Assembly (NCBI GenBank): GCA_907165135.1
Contig: OU015566.1
Coordinates: 8,494,001 to 8,558,000 of the forward strand
Direction: 5' to 3'
Length of the DNA: 64,000 nt
DNA from: Oikopleura dioica
Taxonomy: Eukaryota; Animalia; Chordata
In this document: positions 1 to 9,700 of the stretch, piece by piece
Numbering within the stretch: position 1 is the first letter of the stretch
Layout of the letters: every line of letters starts with the position of its first letter
Made by a program: the position numbers and the translations under genes
Notes under the pieces: generated by a model
Databases searched by the model: none
Told to the model about the DNA's origin: nothing
What the model saw: the letters and a program-made list of their open reading frames with translations, nothing else

Positions 1-2632
1 CCAAAAGTATTCGAAAAGGTTAATTTAGCGCCAGTCAATGACGTGGAAGCGGTCATCGAGCATGTTCAAAAGCCTGACATAATTACTATCCCTATCATCA
101 CTCCCGAAAGCGAACAAGAGTTCATCGAGCTAGTTGAGATGGATATTTTGAAACCAGACAATGAACAAACCATCCCTGTAGCGCTGAACTACCCCGAAGG
201 AGAAAATATACCGATCGATCTCGTCGAAGAAAGCAAACTGATCAAGGCTAAAGACGTCGACAAACTTGTTGAAGATGAAGATTTCAAAGAAAAGATTGCT
301 GTTGAGAGCTTCACAATTATACAGGGAAGAGTTTAAATCATAAAAAATAGATATCAAAGAGTATTTCTAAACTCATCAAGACAACAACAACGACTCTTTC
401 GACAACAACTTCATCTATTATTTCATCGAAGCCAGCGGAACCTAAGCAAGTTGTTGCATTGATTGCTTCGTCTATTCCGGAAGCTGAAGTTATCGAAATA
501 TTAAAAGAAGCATCAGTTGAGCCAATAACTACAGTAATTATCGATGAAACCAAACCCCAAAAAGAAGTCGCAGACGAGATAAACAAATTCCTTCAATCAG
601 AAAATTTAACTGACTCGAATTTGATTCCCGTTCTATCAGAAAAGACGCAACTTCTGCCAGAATATCTCCAAGAAAAAACTGGGAAGCGAACGAATCCTAT
701 TTTGATTGGCGAGAAGATCAGACAGCCAATTATTCCAGAGAAGATCCGCCTTGAAGACGAGCCCAATGAAGAGCTGTTCAATAATTTGACAAAGATACGA
801 CCAGTTATCATCGTTGCTCCTTCTGATATTGAGCCAGAAAAAGTTGAAGATATTTTAGATGAGCTAGATACAAAAGGGGATGTTGATGTCATAGTCGGAG
901 ATGATCATATTATTCAGAAAATGCCTCTTGAAAAAGCTAAAGGTCATTTTATATCGAAAATAAGTAGAACTCATTCTGTGTTTAGAAAAGGATTTAACAA
1001 TCGCTAAACCAGCTCCACTAAAATCCGAGATTTTGGACCCCATTTTGACTCTTGCTGACAAGTCAACGGTCATCCTCCCAATTATAAATTCTTCGAATAC
1101 GGCTGAGTTCGAGAGCATCGATTCTATTCTCAAAGATGCTCCAAATGTTCTACAAGTTGACATCGAAAACGGAACAGTTCCTGAAATCATGGATGATATT
1201 AATACTCAAATCAAAAATACACCGCTCAATAAAGTCGTTGTTCTAAAAGATAAAGAGGAGCCGGACGACCGGATTGATGAAATCATTCCGTTTCTGGAAG
1301 AAAAAGGTATGATAACTAGCTTATCTTTTCTAACTGTTCTACAAGCCGATATTCTTGAAATACTGTCGTCAGATGAACTACCAACGAAAGATGTGACTGG
1401 AACGAGCCTTATCCTGCCAATTTCGTCGGAACAATCACCAACGATTGTGACAGACGCAAAGGATGTTTCCATAAAAACTCAAAAACCTGTCGTTCCCATA
1501 TTTACCGACGATTTCATTGAACCCATCGTGGAGCCAGTAATCTCAAAAGACATAGAGTCTCTTAAACCTGACGAAATTAAAAGAGCGGTCCAATGCTCCG
1601 CAGTTCTCGAACCAGGACGAATGGACAGCCTGAAAGAAAAAATAATTCTTCTTCTTCCAAGGGACCTTCAAATGGCTGCAATTCTTGATCTGCTAGCCGA
1701 GATTAATGATCTTCATCCAGAGCAAAAAGTCATTTTGGCTCATCTTGGTGAAATTTACCGAATAAAAAATGGGCCGAATTTCATCGCTGAAACGAAGCAC
1801 GCCCTTCAAGTACAGTTCTGTACTACTTATGATATTTAAACGATAATTTTAGCTTGTGTTAAAACGAGAGCAGTTCTTCCAGCATAGAGACAATCTTGAG
1901 GCTCTCGATAAACTTAAAAATGATCTTCCAAACTCAATTATCATCAATATCATTGGCGAAACGAAAGATAAAGAATTGATTGACGAACTAGAAAGATTGA
2001 GCTTTTGCTATTACAATAGAAATGTGCAATTTTTGGAAGCGGCATTTATACAGACTTCAACAAAACCCGTCACCATGACAACTACTACGACAACCACGAC
2101 GACGATTACAACAACAACTACAAAGTCTACTTCAACATCAACAGCAGAAGTAACAACCCGATCTTCTGACACTGAGACAACAAAAACTCAACGAGAAGGG
2201 CCTTCAGATACGTGCATAGCATCATGTCCTGAAGTATTCAGCTTTTTCAAAAACAACTCTTGCCCTTCCCATTGCGTTTCTCGAGAGCGAAGAGAATCAG
2301 GCTCATGTGAACTCGTCGAGCGGAGACAAAATGTGTTAATGCAAGATGGTTGCGTTGCAGAAAATGTATATTTGAAAGTTTGCACGGGAGCTTGCCTTGA
2401 GGTTATGAAACAACTTTAAAAATTAATTAGATTGATAATTCAGGACGATGTTGAATTCGACCACGAATATGGGAAGCTCTTTATCTCTGACGGCCTACAC
2501 TTCTGCGAACCCGTTGGTCTTCTTGACCGAATGATTACAGTCGAATGTCCAGATGGAACATCTGATGAACGAATAATCAAAGAGCCTGCAAGATGCAATT
2601 GCGGCTTCCAGCAAATAATAGATCTTATATAA
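1..2632 (+). CDS. 3' part of a large, probably secreted mucin/oikosin-like protein: acidic Ile/Pro/Val-rich segments, Thr-rich tract and C-terminal cystine knot (CTCK); 5' end lies outside the window
   Basis: ORFs 43-336, 459-1007, 1033-1839, 1856-2419 and 2432-2632 join in frame through ~42-50 nt GT-AG introns. Poly-Thr tract, then C..C..CTGAC...CEP...C...CNC cystine-knot pattern. Confidence 0.7.
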
Positions 2633-2754
2633 ACTTGCTTCTGACAAAAACCCTGCTTCAAAAATATAATATCTGACAAAAGCTTTGCACGTTTTTTCTA
2701 AAGGTGGAATTTCTTTATTTCGAAAATAAATAACGTGGTTGCTGCACAGTTGGT

Positions 2755-3140
2755 TTACAAGAATGCAATAAGAATGAACAAGTTCATGATTCCAAAGCAA
2801 AACTGAAGAGCTTTTTTTCGTTGAAAAACCTATCTAACCATATCTTTTGATTAAATATAATAAAAATAAATCAACTGTCCTTGAATGTATTTGTATCTTG
2901 GGAGAATGGCTCGGATGTAGATCATGGCAGCAATCCAGTAGATGGCTTCGGCAAAGTTTCTTTGCTGGACGGCGACGACAGGCTGGATAGAGGAAACAAC
3001 AGGTCTTACAAGACGCGAGTTTTGAGAAAGCTTTGAAATCAAAATTTAGAATTGAAATTTATGCATTTGTGTCTTACCACTCGAGGAGCGACTGGCCGAG
3101 AAAGCTGTCGGAGAGGAGTAACGACTTGTCCAAATCTCAT
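2755..3140 (-). CDS. 89-aa protein: mitochondrial-type presequence plus ND1 (NuoH) C-terminus-like hydrophobic peptide; exons 3140-3078, 3030-2880, 2810-2755
   Basis: Spliced product MRFGQVVTPLRQLSRPVAPRVLSQNSRLVRPVVSSIQPVVAVQQRN-FAEAIYWIAAMIYIRAILPRYKYIQALQFCFGIMNLFILIAFL*. Intron 1 is GT-AG, 47 nt; intron 2 is GA-AG, 69 nt. TTAG lies one base before the ATG. YIRAILPRYKYIQ matches the ND1 motif WIRxxxPRFRYDQ. Confidence 0.75.
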
Positions 3141-3788
3141 TCTAACATGCATCAGTGGATAAGAAGGATTATTGAATAACTTCGTTGTGGAGTAAGAAAT
3201 AATTATATAAACGAGTGAAGAAAGAAATCGACAGCTAGGAATAAAATAAAAAGAAAATGCGACAGAATATTTTTCAATAACTCGCGATCAAATAATAAGG
3301 CTGCATCACAGTTGCTGCAATAATCGTAAATTTCGAAGCATTAGTAGCTGAAAGCTCTTGATCATAATTAACCATGCACTTCGCATATTGAAAAAAATAT
3401 CTAACAGAACATCTCTCTAATTATAAAATTTGGCACGATTCTTTCATTTTTTGTCCTGTAGCGAAAATTTATTTTGTTTTTTGTCAATAGTTGAACATAT
3501 TTTTTAAAATTTTTTGTGATGAAGGGAGAAAGGTGAAATATTCACCGTGAAAAGTGCTGTGAAAGTGAGTATAAAAAGGCTGATGCACAGGTTTGAAATC
3601 AGTTTTTATCTGTTGCAGTTGTTATTCTCATAGTTGAAGAAGTGAGCGGAGCAAGAAAGTGGAAAACGAAAACTAAGTAGGATTGACGTGGCCGAGACTG
3701 TTGAAATTGATCGTGGCGGGGTCGAGGTTGGCTGATGTGCCGGGAAGAGCGCTAGAAAAATGATAAAAAGTAAGTTGAAATAGACCGT

Positions 3789-6700
3789 TCACTTTTGGGT
3801 CGTCGTAGATCGCTTTGAATGCGCTAAATCATCAAAATTGAGGACGAGTAATTTGGTCAACTCGGTTCCATTTCGCGATCCAACGGCGCAGACAAGCTTC
3901 GTCTCAGAGGCCTTGATTCTCCAAACAACGCCGCCGGTATTTCTCGTATCCAACGAGACCAAATCGCGAATCCACTCGCCAGTCTCCGCATTCCACAATT
4001 TCACCGTTCCATCATCCGACGACGTGATAATGAACTTGCCACAATATTGGAGGGAAGTAACGGCCGAGTTGTGCTTGTTTTTGTCGTCCAATGTTCTCAC
4101 AAGAAGGCCTTAAATGATCCCATAAGAAACTAAAAGAGCTTCTTAGAGAGTTACCTGTGTCAATGTCCCAAATTTTTACAAATGAATCGGCATTTCCAGA
4201 GACGAGAGTTTTCCCTCTGAAAATAGATATAAACGGCAAGATGTAGTTACGTCTCTTACCGTAGCTCCATGCCACTAGTCAAGCTTTGGTGTCCAACAAG
4301 CGTGTGTAGTAAGGTGCCATTATCAGCATCCCACACCTATGAAATAATCATTAGATTCTGCTTCTACAAGGAGGTTGCGTCTCACCATGATGTTTGTATC
4401 TAACGAACCGCTGACAACATGTTTTCCATCGAATTGAAGTGAATAAACCCGCTGTGTGTGGCCTTGAAGAGTGTGCAAAAGCTTACAATTCGATTTCGGA
4501 TCCCAAATCTATTTTTCAGTTAGCAACAAGACAACTTGTATCTGATTTACCTTTACTGTGTTGTCATACGATCCCGAGACAATTTTCTTGCCATCAAAGC
4601 ATACGCATCTTACCGCAGCAAAATGACCAACAAGAACAGCCTTGCATTTGAGAGTGGTTAGATCCCAGAGGCGCAAGGTATTGTCTCGAGAGCCGGAAAC
4701 GACCTCGTTTCCAGCCAAGGCCATGCATCGAACTGTTGAGCAGTGGCCGTAAAGTGTTTCTATGCATTTGCCGGTCTCGGCGGACCAAACTCGTAGAGTC
4801 CGATCGGTGGAGCCAGAAACGATCCAGTCATCCTTTTTGTCAGTTAATTTTTGCAATCAAAAATAATAAAAGACTCACCTTCATTTCTAGGCACCAAACT
4901 CCGCCCGTGTGTCCAATAAGCGTCGATTGGCATTGTCCGGTTTTTGCGTTCCAGACCTAAAACTGTAGTAACGAATTCCGACCCTACTTGCTTACCTTGA
5001 GTGTACTATCATCGCTTCCAGAAACGATTCTCTGACCATCAAATTGAAGACAAGTGACAACATGGTCATCGTGGCCAACCAATTCTAGCGGCGTCACGTC
5101 TCCTTCTATCCAGACCTTCTCTATGACAGTGTTTTTTTTATATTGCACAAGAATTGGGGACGCTAACTCCTCCGGCCAGAGACATCGTAGAAAGTCCCCG
5201 AATAGCTCAAAATGTAGCTAAGGGTCTACTGCGTGCAGTGAGGGGGTTGAAATTTTCTTGAGCCCACGTGATATTCCGTAATATTACGTAATAGTAGGAA
5301 ATAATGTATTTTTTCAAATTAAGACTATAATGGACATCGTCATTAGTACCATTCGACGTCATTTTTCATCCTCTTTTTTTCTCAAAGGTCATCCGAGGTC
5401 ACGTGACCCCAACTGACCTCAAAAATAAATAAAAGCTATATACAGTGACACATACATCATTTGATCACTTTTCAAAGATCTTTTTATGTTCGAATCGATT
5501 GAGGTCATTTTGGGTCACGTGACCTCGGGCCGTTTCAGCCCCGTTCCTTGATTTTTAAATTTAAGGGCTTGACGGCCCTTCGGGCCGTTTCAGCCCCGTT
5601 CCTTGATTTTTAAATTTAAGGGGCTTGACGGCCCTTCGGGCCGTTTCAGCCCCGTTCCTTGATTTTTAAATTTAAGGGGCTTGACGGCCCTTCGGGCCGT
5701 TTCAGCCCCGTTCCTTGATTTTTAAATTTAAGGGGCTTGACGGCCCTTCGGGCCGTTTCAGCCCCGTTCCTTGATTTTTAAATTTAAGGGGCTTGACGGC
5801 CCTTCGGGCCGTTTCAGCCCCGTTCCTTGATTTTTAAATTTAAGGGGCTTGACGGCCCTTCGGGCCGTTTCAGCCCCGTTCCTTGATTTTAAATTTAAGG
5901 GGCTTGACGGCCCTTCGGGCCGTTTCAGCCCCGTTCCTTGATTTTTAAATTTAAGGGGCTTGACGGCCCTTCGGGCCGTTTCAGCCCCGTTCCTTGATTT
6001 TTAAATTTAAGGGGCTTGACGGCCCTTCGGGCCGTTTCAGCCCCGTTCCTTGATTTTTAAATTTAAGGGGCTTGACGGCCCTTCGGGCCGTTTCAGCCCC
6101 GTTCCTTGATTTTTAAATTTAGGGGCTTGACGGCCCTTCGGGCCGTTTCAGCCCCGTTCCTTGATTTTTAAATTTAAGGGGCTTGACGGCCCTTCGGGCC
6201 GTTTCAGCCCCGTTCCTTGATTTTTAAATTTAAGGGGCTTGACGGCCCTTCGGGCCGTTTCAGCCCCGTTCCTTGATTTTTAAATTTAAGGGGCTTGACG
6301 GCCCTTCGGGCCGTTTCAGCCCCGTTCCTTGATTTTTAAATTTAAGGGGCTTGACGGCCCTTCGGGCCGTTTCAGCCCCGTTCCTTGATTTTTAAATTTA
6401 AGGGCTTGACGGCCCTTCGGGCCGTTTCAGCCCCGTTCCTTGATTTTTAAATTTAAGGGCTTGACGGCCCTTCGGGCCGTTTCAGCCCCGTTCCTTGATT
6501 TTTAAATTTAAGGGCTTGACGGCCCTTCGGGCCGTTTCAGCCCCGTTCCTTGATTTTTAAATTTAAGGGCTTGACGGCCCTTCGGGCCGTTTCAGCCCCG
6601 TTCCTTGATTTTTAAATTTAAGGGGCTTGACGGCCCTTCGGGCCGTTTCAGCCCCGTTCCTTGATTTTTAAATTTAAGGGGCTTGACGGCCCTTCGGGCC

Positions 6701-9700
6701 GTTTCAGCCCCGTTCCTTGATTTTTAAATTTAAGGGGCTTGACGGCCCTTCGGGCCGTTTCAGCCCCGTTCCTTGATTTTTAAATTTAAGGGGCTTGACG
6801 GCCCTTCGGGCCGTTTCAGCCCCGTTCCTTGATTTTAAATTTAAGGGGCTTGACGGCCCTTCGGGCCGTTTCAGCCCCGTTCCTTGATTTTTAAATTTAA
6901 GGGGCTTGACGGCCCTTCGGGCCGTTTCAGCCCCGTTCCTTGATTTTTAAATTTAAGGGCTTGACGGCCCTTCGGGCCGTTTCAGCCCCGTTCCTTGATT
7001 TTTAAATTTAAGGGGCTTGACGGCCCTTCGGGCCGTTTCAGCCCCGTTCCTTGATTTTTAAATTTAAGGGGCTTGACGGCCCTTCGGGCCGTTTCAGCCC
7101 CGTTCCTTGATTTTAAATTTAAGGGCTTGACGGCCCTTCGGGCCGTTTCAGCCCCGTTCCTTGATTTTTAAATTTAAGGGGCTTGACGGCCCTTCGGGCC
7201 GTTTCAGCCCCGTTCCTTGATTTTTAAATTTAAGGGGCTTGACGGCCCTTCGGGCCGTTTCAGCCCCGTTCCTTGATTTTTAAATTTAAGGGGCTTGACG
7301 GCCCTTCGGGCCGTTTCAGCCCCGTTCCTTGATTTTTAAATTTAAGGGGCTTGACGGCCCTTCGGGCCGTTTCAGCCCCGTTCCTTGATTTTTAAATTTA
7401 AGGGCTTGACGGCCCTTCGGGCCGTTTCAGCCCCGTTCCTTGATTTTTAAATTTAAGGGGCTTGACGGCCCTTCGGGCCGTTTCAGCCCCGTTCCTTGAT
7501 TTTTAAATTTAAGGGGCTTGACGGCCCTTCGGGCCGTTTCAGCCCCGTTCCTTGATTTTTAAATTTAAGGGCTTGACGGCCCTTCGGGCCGTTTCAGCCC
7601 CGTTCCTTGATTTTTAAATTTAAGGGCTTGACGGCCCTTCGGGCCGTTTCAGCCCCGTTCCTTGATTTTTAAATTTAAGGGGCTTGACGGCCCTTCGGGC
7701 CGTTTCAGCCCCGTTCCTTGATTTTTAAATTTAAGGGGCTTGACGGCCCTTCGGGCCGTTTCAGCCCCGTTCCTTGATTTTTAAATTTAAGGGGCTTGAC
7801 GGCCCTTCGGGCCGTTTCAGCCCCGTTCCTTGATTTTTAAATTTAAGGGGCTTGACATAAGCGTGGGACTCTGAGGTGATCAATCTCAGTTATGTCCCCA
7901 ACCCCACCCTCACCCATATGGTATAAAAATATAAATTATTCAAGTTTTTTGCTTACTTATGGTTCCAAATTTAATTTTCCAAAATTTTATTTTGAAAATT
8001 TTTTTATTTTTTTCTTGATTATGACATCAGAAATATGTCCACAAAAATAAACTAACCTTCTTCTTTCTAGACTCATGAATTCTTTCTTCTTTTCTTCTTC
8101 CATGAGAAACTCTCACGGAGGTCCTCCGGGTCCTCCACCCGAAATTCAGAGAAGTCCGACTTTGGCAGCCGATTTCGGCATGATAATGCCATCTCTAAAA
8201 TTTTTAACCCCCTTACTGCACAATTTGGACCCTTGGCTACATTTTCCGCCCTAAAGCTTTACAGTAGCATTACTGTGGCCGGAGGAGTTAGCGTCCCCAA
8301 TAAGCACCTTTTTGTGCAATATAAAAACACTGTCTATTCGTTTCTTTCTCATTATTGTCTTCTTCCACGGGGAATGAATGTTCTGACCAGTGATTTCTGG
8401 AGCTCTCGTTTTTGCCCAGCTCTTGTATTGCTTCAGCACAGGCGGAGAGCATTCTAGGCGTGGTAGGTCATATTTTTAATTTTAAAAGGCAAGTGATAGG
8501 TGAACGCGGACTCTGGAGATTTCGACATACTAATTGACTCCTAATTAATCTCTTTATATGCTCTTTGGTGGTCCTCTCTGATACATTTCCTATCGCTCAT
8601 TTGCGCAAAATAAATATTCTCAAAGTCGACCATCGCTTACCTTTTACTTTTTCGTCTTGGCATTTTTGACGCCAAATTGTGTTGTCGTCAGCGAGTTGCC
8701 GCCAAGTACGGCATGTTTGCGCCGCAGAAACAAGGTCTTTTGGCTCTAGATTCGAGAGCACATGAAGGGCAAGCTCGGGCGGAAGGAGGGAGATGAAATC
8801 TCGTTGGAAGCGCGGTTCGATTACTGAAAACATGATCGAGGAAACATTCTCTATTTCTTGACATCTAAAATAGCCGGTCTCTCTTATATATATGATTATA
8901 AGCCAATTACCAAAAGTTCATATAATATATAAGTACTCATATAATTATACTGATTAAGTTATAAAGAGAACTTAAATTTTTGGTTCATCGGAGCTTGAAC
9001 TTACCATCTCGCATAAAACGAATATTCTTAGGAGAAGAAACGTCGATCAACCTTTCAAGGGCGATTTGTTGTTCCTCTTCGGAAAAAGTGCTGTAAGCCT
9101 GAAGCCAACTGTCGATCCGATCCATCTTGGCTTCTGGCTTCTTTGCCGCCCAGTCCAAAGTCTTTTTGGGAGGGCATTTAGGTTTTCTACGAAGAAATGG
9201 CTTATTTTTCTCAAAGAATTAGCATGGTACTTACAGCTTTGGTCTTGAATGTTGCTTTTGCTTCGCTCATTTTCATTTTCCTGCGGCGAACTCGTCTGCT
9301 CGAGTAAAGGCTTCTTGGCATCAGGCAATTTGGGTGGCGAGTCGCGAGAAAAGGCAAGCTTCCTCTTTCGGAAACTGTCAGGGGTTGTTGATACACCGGA
9401 AGAAATGCTCTTTGCATTGGGGGTGATGTTATTTTTTGGAGAAGAAGAAAGCGACGCTCTTTTCCGCGTCGACATTGTCGAGGATGAGGTATTCATTGGC
9501 TCTGCTGGTGGCGGGGATGCTTTACTAGTGCTGGGGATGTCGTGGGGATGTTTGGGTGATGTGGAGGCCTCATTTTTCGGCGATAGGTCGAGATTTCCAG
9601 ACGATGAGCTGCTCCCTTGACGCAGCGAAGAAAGTCCGAATGATTCTAGTCTGCTGCTCACTCTCTCCTTCATTTTTGAAAGGGGTGATCTAAAAATAGT

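Follow-up and report, generated by a model that had tools for sequence, protein, structure and literature searches.

A spliced nuclear gene of Oikopleura dioica that probably encodes an imported C-terminal piece of mitochondrial ND1

The mitochondrial gene nad1 of Oikopleura dioica is probably split, with a small nuclear gene supplying helices 7 and 8 of ND1 as an imported hairpin; we put the probability of this reading at about 0.8. On the organelle side, it draws on published gene lengths. The nuclear gene lies on the minus strand of chr1 of O. dioica OKI2018_I69, near one end of a 64,000-nucleotide stretch of contig OU015566.1 (chr1 of GCA_907165135.1; positions 8,494,001 to 8,558,000) that we call the window, and by whose first letter all positions below are numbered; on the contig, the locus falls at ~8.494-8.500 Mb. 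A first-pass annotation of the window, made from its letters and open reading frames, had proposed a split nad1. What now speaks for that proposal is an expressed nuclear gene, purifying selection on it, a presequence-like N-terminal half, and a match to the end of ND1; what falls short is the Pfam score of that match, which lies below the gathering score of the family.

The gene is made up of three exons between 3140 and 2755, and its 270 coding nucleotides amount to 89 codons and a stop (Table 1); coordinates, strand, exons, and protein are all as the first-pass annotation had described them. The public annotation carries the same splice model under the name Oidioi.mRNA.OKI2018_I69.chr1.g2263.t1 (P0001, 93 aa), with four extra N-terminal residues, and residues 5-93 of that entry are 100% identical to the 89-aa protein. 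We rejected the annotated start of the 93-aa version, ATG 3152, which adds the residues MHVR (3141-3152, minus strand). The spliced leader (SL) is joined downstream of this ATG; with the SL acceptor AG at 3143-3142, ATG 3152 lies outside the mRNA, and the 89-aa protein is the true product. An alternative GG-AG splice that would lead to a protein of 87 aa was also ruled out, all reads and contigs joining 2880 to 2810.

Table 1. Positions of the features of the nad1-tail gene, numbered within the window
Feature	Position	Strand	Basis
SL trans-splicing AG acceptor	3142..3143	-	Unaligned read and contig ends behind 3143 are the SL reverse complement
Exon 1, coding part: residues 1-21, start of presequence-like region	3078..3140	-	Begins at ATG 3140
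Intron 1, 47 nt, GT-AG	3031..3077	-	Absent from metatranscriptome contigs (X1, X4) and from X15/X16 reads
Exon 2 (whole)	2880..3030	-	Sequence model and RNA
Exon 2, first part: residues 22-46, remainder of presequence-like region, end QQRN	2956..3030	-	Translation
Exon 2, second part: residues 47-71 and base 1 of codon 72; first hydrophobic helix (putative equivalent of ND1 helix 7)	2880..2955	-	Profile and alignments
Loop motif IRAILPRYKYIQ	2881-2916	-	Within exon 2, second part
Intron 2, 69 nt, noncanonical GA-AG	2811..2879	-	Joint 2810/2880 in reads and contigs
Exon 3, coding part: residues 72-89; second hydrophobic helix (putative equivalent of ND1 helix 8)	2755..2810	-	Translation
TAA stop	2755-2757	-	Translation
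3' UTR; AATAAA at 2714-2719; poly(A) added at ~2692-2699	2692..2754	-	End of X4 contig

RNA mapped to window positions 2600-3300 came from two 2026 RNA-seq runs labelled O. dioica (X15 and X16, as raw reads) and from two marine metatranscriptomes (X1 and X4, as Logan contigs). The three exons are covered and the depth is zero in both introns. The joint 2810/2880 is crossed by 23 reads in X15, 7 reads in X16, and the contigs X1 and X4. The ends of intron 2 read CT..TC on the plus strand, that is, GA..AG on the strand of the gene; the alignment can be shifted by up to 3 bases, yet only the GA-AG placement retains an AG acceptor, and so we assign intron 2 to the GA-AG introns, which are common in O. 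dioica and a known peculiarity of it (PMC7072748). At intron 1, apparent skips of 48 or 50 nt, with 1 or 3 letters between, proved to be variants of the last codon of exon 1, and the unaligned ends of X15 and X16 reads before 3081 run on into exon 2 of a diverged lineage.

In each of the four runs, unaligned read or contig ends behind 3143 match the O. dioica SL in reverse complement, the SL sequence having been reported (PMC6883708); X15 contributes 30 such reads. The mature mRNA thus starts with the 40-nt SL, followed by A (3141) and ATG 3140. At its other end, the 370-nt contig from X4 has a T-run before 2692 on the plus strand, corresponding to a poly(A) tail ~15-22 nt past the AATAAA, and this contig is essentially a full-length mRNA. 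Both of the predicted joints and the spliced leader, which the first-pass annotation had named as points to be checked in RNA, are therefore seen, and the poly(A) tail is seen in addition. The nad1-tail gene is SL trans-spliced, polyadenylated, and transcribed in laboratory animals and in wild plankton.

Three further genomic copies were recovered, one from an ENA metagenome (L001) and two from JGI metagenomes (L004 and L005); a degenerate pattern based on YIRAILPRYKYIQ led to the latter two. The three-exon layout recurs in each of them and in L001, with a GT-AG intron 1 of 39-47 nt and a GA-AG intron 2 of 61-69 nt, and the GA donor of intron 2 is present in 4 of 4 genomic copies when the window is counted. 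Their intron sequences are barely alignable, with intron positions kept, and the changes in their exons are almost all at third codon positions. Collinearity between L004 and the window extends over the upstream FBXW7 gene, on which ground we regard the genomic copies as orthologues. Among the five versions of the gene (the window, L001, L004, L005, and the lineage of X15 and X16), the only replacements are V21I, V32A, V33I, and A55G, and there are many synonymous changes. Between the X15/X16 lineage and the window, 26-28 codons differ and two of the differences alter the protein (V21I and A55G); by the Nei-Gojobori method dS is 0.55, dN is 0.0125, and dN/dS is 0.023, with values per half of 0.03 for the leader and 0.016 for the mature part. 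The gene is protein coding and under very strong purifying selection across deeply diverged O. dioica lineages.

With two spliceosomal introns, an SL, a poly(A) tail, an arginine encoded by AGA (see below), and a dN/dS of 0.02, the locus is neither a raw NUMT nor a pseudogene nor a spurious ORF, in agreement with the earlier view that it is not a raw NUMT. An exhaustive phmmer search of 1.84 billion representative proteins for an orthologue beyond the O. dioica species complex returned only the protein itself; that library therefore holds no orthologue from another larvacean genus at detectable similarity. One database protein, P0002 (145 aa, ENA; L001 132-569), was considered as a distinct protein and rejected, being a prokaryote-style gene call that runs through both introns of the L001 orthologue. 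Metagenome pipelines applied to eukaryotic DNA produced it as an annotation artefact.

Upstream of the gene, in the same orientation, lies an FBXW7-like gene; its other neighbor is a giant VWD/C8/VWA gene on the opposite strand, which faces it with its 3' end. Only ~60 nt separate the end of the giant gene (plus strand; window 2432-2632, with its TAA at 2630-2632) from the place where poly(A) is added to the nad1-tail mRNA, a tight convergence of 3' ends. The FBXW7-like gene has an insert of ~3.2 kb in the Okinawa window (~5137-8320) that is missing in L004, where the flanks are contiguous (~4710-4740); the insert fits the TIR element proposed at that place by the first-pass annotation. A 101-aa ORF in another frame (2495-2800, minus strand) overlaps exon 3, the 3' UTR, and the last exon of the neighboring gene. 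No read in the RNA data examined supports a separate product of this ORF, which has most likely arisen by chance in AT-rich sequence.

Sequence comparison of the C-terminal 43 residues of the protein brought up a single likeness, to the C-terminal end of ND1/NuoH. In a search covering ~24,700 Pfam families, NADHdh (PF00146, ND1/NuoH) was the sole family to match, with an E value of 0.0013 for the tail and 0.0035 for the whole protein, and the match occupies profile positions 255-294 of 298, the extreme C-terminus. The HMM comparison suggested in the first-pass annotation thus came out in favor of ND1 as regards family, E value, and position but not as regards score, which at 18.6 bits is below the family gathering score of 27; for reference, the tail of E. 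coli NuoH (56 aa) scores 59 bits against PF00146. None of 10 composition controls (nine shuffles and the reversed peptide) matched NADHdh, and the best E value to any family among them was 0.19, to an unrelated one. A single BLASTP comparison of the tail with E. coli NuoH gave 11 identities in 22 positions at NuoH 283-304, with an E value of 7e-5. The Smith-Waterman optimum joins peptide residues 6-43 to NuoH 277-314 with a score of 51, versus 29 ± 4.4 for shuffles, and the observed score was reached by 3 of 5000 shuffles; this optimum is ungapped, as had been claimed for the alignment to the end of ND1/NuoH. Since NuoH 270-317 corresponds to positions 251-298 of PF00146, the Pfam, BLASTP, and permutation tests all put the peptide at one homologous position.

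The mature part contains two hydrophobic stretches of 18 residues each (Kyte-Doolittle means of 1.58 and 2.25), which flank the basic loop PRYKYIQ. The loop motif reads IRAILPRYKYIQ in the tail, compared with IRASLPRPRYDQ in E. coli NuoH and VRAAFPRYRYDQ in plant Nad1. Of the motif (I/V)RAxxPR(F/Y/P)RYDQ, the tail keeps the I, R, A, P, R, Y, and Q and has K in place of R; the Asp of RYDQ, which the tails of both E. coli NuoH and plant Nad1 conserve, is Ile in that of O. dioica.

A language-model neighbor search of the ESM-Atlas named NADHdh as well: by features, 89 of the 100 nearest clusters carry NADHdh, with a top score of 0.84, which by the calibration of the tool is a weak lead. By structure, the neighbors of the hairpin are two-helix proteins of a generic kind and from many families. 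A phmmer search with the 89-aa protein against PDB sequences gave no match up to an E value of 10, and the NCBIfam search gave no match. At such a length, blank results from single-sequence database searches with the tail are to be expected: when the E. coli tail was used as the query, Drosophila ND1 scored 23.5 bits, Tetrahymena ND1b 18.9 bits, and Euglena ND1 14 bits. True divergent ND1 tails, such as Tetrahymena ND1b, score no better than the O. dioica tail.

Residues 1-46 include 7 Arg, 10 Val, 5 Pro, and 5 Ser (6 Ser/Thr), with no Lys and no Asp or Glu, and end in QQRN, followed by F-A-E. These counts agree with the first-pass description of an Arg/Ser/Val-rich, acid-free segment of 46 aa ending QQRN-F-A. 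The segment lacks the hydrophobic core of a signal peptide. The sequence R45-N46-F47-A48 fits the R-3 rule and adjoins the start of the likeness to ND1 at residue 48-49. For the leader, the helical hydrophobic moment peaks at 0.79, which is not significantly above the value for shuffles (p = 0.12). By composition and by the cleavage-site rule, residues 1-46 fit a putative mitochondrial presequence. The arginine of the conserved PR pair is codon 66, and it is encoded by AGA, as had been noted earlier, and so is Arg in the standard code. In the ascidian mitochondrial code AGA stands for Gly. With AGA coding for this conserved Arg, the gene cannot be read inside the organelle, which implies that it is read in the cytosol.

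On the mitochondrial side, published annotations give lengths that bear on the question. The nad1 coding sequence of O. dioica is 615 bp long, with a TTG start and a TAA stop, compared to 853-1035 bp (mean, 914) in 38 tunicates (Klirs et al. 2024, PMC11384887, Table 1), and these published lengths leave it ~80-140 codons short of the gene in other tunicates. In the same annotation, gaps of 41 bp and 35 bp separate nad1 from the upstream tRNA-Met and the downstream cox1, respectively (Klirs et al. 2024, PMC11384887). The Okinawa mitogenome, which belongs to the lineage of the window, has nd1 at 98-820 and cox1 from 859 (Dierckxsens et al. 2024, PMC11384890), and all of its coding genes end with a TAA that abuts an A-homopolymer (PMC11384890). 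On the annotations of both groups, nad1 is thus short in each of two independent mitogenomes, and the TAA and A-run define its end clearly. Among the PDB entries tabulated, no intact ND1 chain has fewer than 292 residues, and we infer that an ND1 of ~204 residues is too small for eight helices and two long quinone-site loops. Together, 204 and 43 residues make 247, still ~40 fewer than in the shortest tunicate ND1.

Other complex I genes of O. dioica are also unusual. The first-pass annotation was correct that a nuclear transfer of nad3 had been reported: nad3 was located in the nucleus by Klirs et al. (2024, PMC11384887), whose nuclear search covered nad2, nad3, nad4L, nad6, and atp8, i.e., genes wholly missing, and not pieces of nad1. 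In the mitogenome, nad2, nad4L, and nad6 were not found (Klirs et al. 2024, PMC11384887). Further, nad4 is 876 bp long in O. dioica and at least 1209 bp in other tunicates, and nad5 is 1248 bp long and at least 1458 bp, respectively (PMC11384887, Table 1). The missing parts of nad4 and nad5 might likewise be nuclear.

The explanation that competes most directly with a split nad1 is a small mitochondrial protein of the inner membrane of some other kind, for example, a lineage-specific accessory OXPHOS subunit or an assembly micropeptide, in which the likeness to ND1 would reflect chance or the convergence of short hydrophobic hairpins with a basic loop. Many nuclear OXPHOS subunits consist of a presequence and one or two helices, and such a frequent build favors this explanation, as do the small number of residues compared (~40), a Pfam score under the gathering threshold, the absence of the D of RYDQ, the generic two-helix proteins of many families that are the structural neighbors of the hairpin, and the lack of a database-wide sequence match (phmmer against the PDB, NCBIfam, and the 1.84 billion representatives). 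We nonetheless consider it unlikely. Three tests, at ~1e-3 to 1e-4, agree on one homologous place for the peptide, running to the C-terminus, and the composition controls were negative. Furthermore, of ~24,700 Pfam families the one to match is that of a subunit with an abnormally short mitochondrial gene in just this species.

The gene could also be derived from nad1 in an animal whose mitochondrial ND1 keeps helices 7-8, in which case its product would duplicate these helices, either in a new or regulatory role or as an intermediate of transfer with both copies active. A transferred gene may coexist in mitochondrial and nuclear copies in plants, but in O. dioica the 204 residues are too few for eight helices and two long conserved loops (ND1 chains tabulated from the PDB have at least 292), the mitogenome has no room beside nad1, and a dN/dS of 0.02 at a dS of 0.55-0.7 argues for an indispensable role; we regard an extra copy as highly improbable. 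Nor do we give much more than a few percent to a small membrane protein outside mitochondria, such as a two-helix tail of the ER or secretory route, with an N-terminal half that is not a cleaved presequence. In favor of such a protein, targeting was assessed here from residue composition and a cleavage-site rule, the amphipathic moment falls short of significance, and conservation is as high in the leader as in the mature part, which is unusual in presequences. Against this, the first 46 residues have 7 Arg, no acidic residue, and no signal-peptide core, the R-3 type site falls exactly where the likeness to ND1 starts, and the sole family likeness is to a mitochondrial protein.

If nad1 is split as we propose, the mtDNA would retain a shortened nad1 of ~204 codons, presumably encoding helices 1-6 with the quinone-site loops, and the nuclear gene would contribute transmembrane helices 7 and 8 with the conserved matrix loop between them. 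The 89-aa precursor would be synthesized in the cytosol and imported via TOM/TIM23 by its Arg-rich, acid-free leader of 46 residues. Cleavage by MPP is predicted after R45-N46, and Icp55 may then trim F47, as at an R-3 type site. The resulting hairpin of 42-43 residues would enter the membrane from the matrix side, with both of its ends in the intermembrane space and its positive PRYKY loop in the matrix. In solved structures of complex I, loops 1-2, 3-4, 5-6, and 7-8 of ND1 face the matrix, and the proposed topology of the hairpin is therefore that of ND1 helices 7-8. The hairpin would finally join the mitochondrially made ND1 (helices 1-6) when the heel of complex I is assembled, in the way that ND1b joins ND1a in ciliates. 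A likely model for its import is the nuclear-encoded subunit c of the ATP synthase (Su9), for which a presequence and the import and insertion of a hairpin are established; Su9 has a long presequence, a two-helix hairpin, a basic matrix loop, and ends directed to the intermembrane space, all of which we infer for the O. dioica protein, but it has no sequence relationship with it and belongs to another complex.

The closest parallel for the division itself is found in ciliates. In Tetrahymena complex I (PDB 7tgh and related entries), ND1 consists of two chains, ND1a of 284 aa (NuoH 12-274) and ND1b of 59 aa, of which residues 8-45 align to NuoH 273-310. The O. dioica piece corresponds to NuoH ~274-314 (Pfam 255-294), so that in both cases the break would fall between helices 6 and 7, as in ciliate nad1_a and nad1_b. 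The piece thus starts at the boundary of Tetrahymena ND1a and ND1b, a place where ND1 demonstrably functions when cut. Unlike in ciliates, in which both pieces are encoded in mtDNA and made in the organelle (PMC3318907, PMC5664110), the small piece in O. dioica is nuclear, with introns and a leader, and would have to be imported.

Transfer of genes in pieces is known from cox2a/cox2b in chlorophycean algae and apicomplexans and from cox1-c in many protists (PMC5664110). The O. dioica gene resembles cox2b and cox1-c in that a mitochondrial membrane-protein gene appears to be divided and its C-terminal piece is nuclear, with import in O. dioica being the predicted route; it differs from them in that the gene is nad1 and the host is an animal. 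The same survey lists fission of nad1 in ciliates alone, without a nuclear piece, names wasp cox2, with both halves in mtDNA, as the sole fragmented mitochondrial protein gene of an animal, and states that recent functional transfers have not been described for animals (PMC5664110). Like the nuclear nad3 of O. dioica, which has introns and a predicted target peptide (PMC11384887), the nad1-tail gene would be a hydrophobic complex I core gene in the nucleus, but nad3 moved whole, whereas of nad1 only the last ~43 residues of a larger subunit would have moved. In the first-pass annotation, a split nad1 was not known to have been reported for O. dioica. Full-text searches of the literature on Oikopleura and appendicularian mitogenomes with nad1, and on split nad1 and nuclear transfer, likewise found no report of the gene.

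It is possible, although we think it rather doubtful, that nad1 is the first visible case of a general fragmentation of the mitochondrial complex I genes of O. dioica into nuclear pieces. Hydrophobic fragments would in that case be supplied by tiny, SL trans-spliced nuclear genes that escape both annotation and HMMs for whole genes. Were such a process general, the membrane arm of complex I in a chordate would be built largely of imported helix hairpins.

The gene content of animal mitochondria is usually regarded as frozen, and very hydrophobic core subunits are the textbook example of genes that cannot be moved. If the split of nad1 is as proposed, it would be, by the literature found, the first piecewise transfer from organelle to nucleus in an animal and the first nuclear piece of nad1 in any eukaryote. 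A chordate would then divide ND1, the quinone-site subunit of complex I, and import two of its helices from the cytosol, and the boundary between helices 6 and 7 would be a tolerated break in ND1, shown independently of ciliates. Such a gene would provide a natural template for the allotopic expression of ND1 fragments. It would also explain part of the puzzling shortness of mitochondrial genes in O. dioica and would mean that for nad2, nad4L, nad6, and atp8 annotators should seek fragments rather than whole genes.
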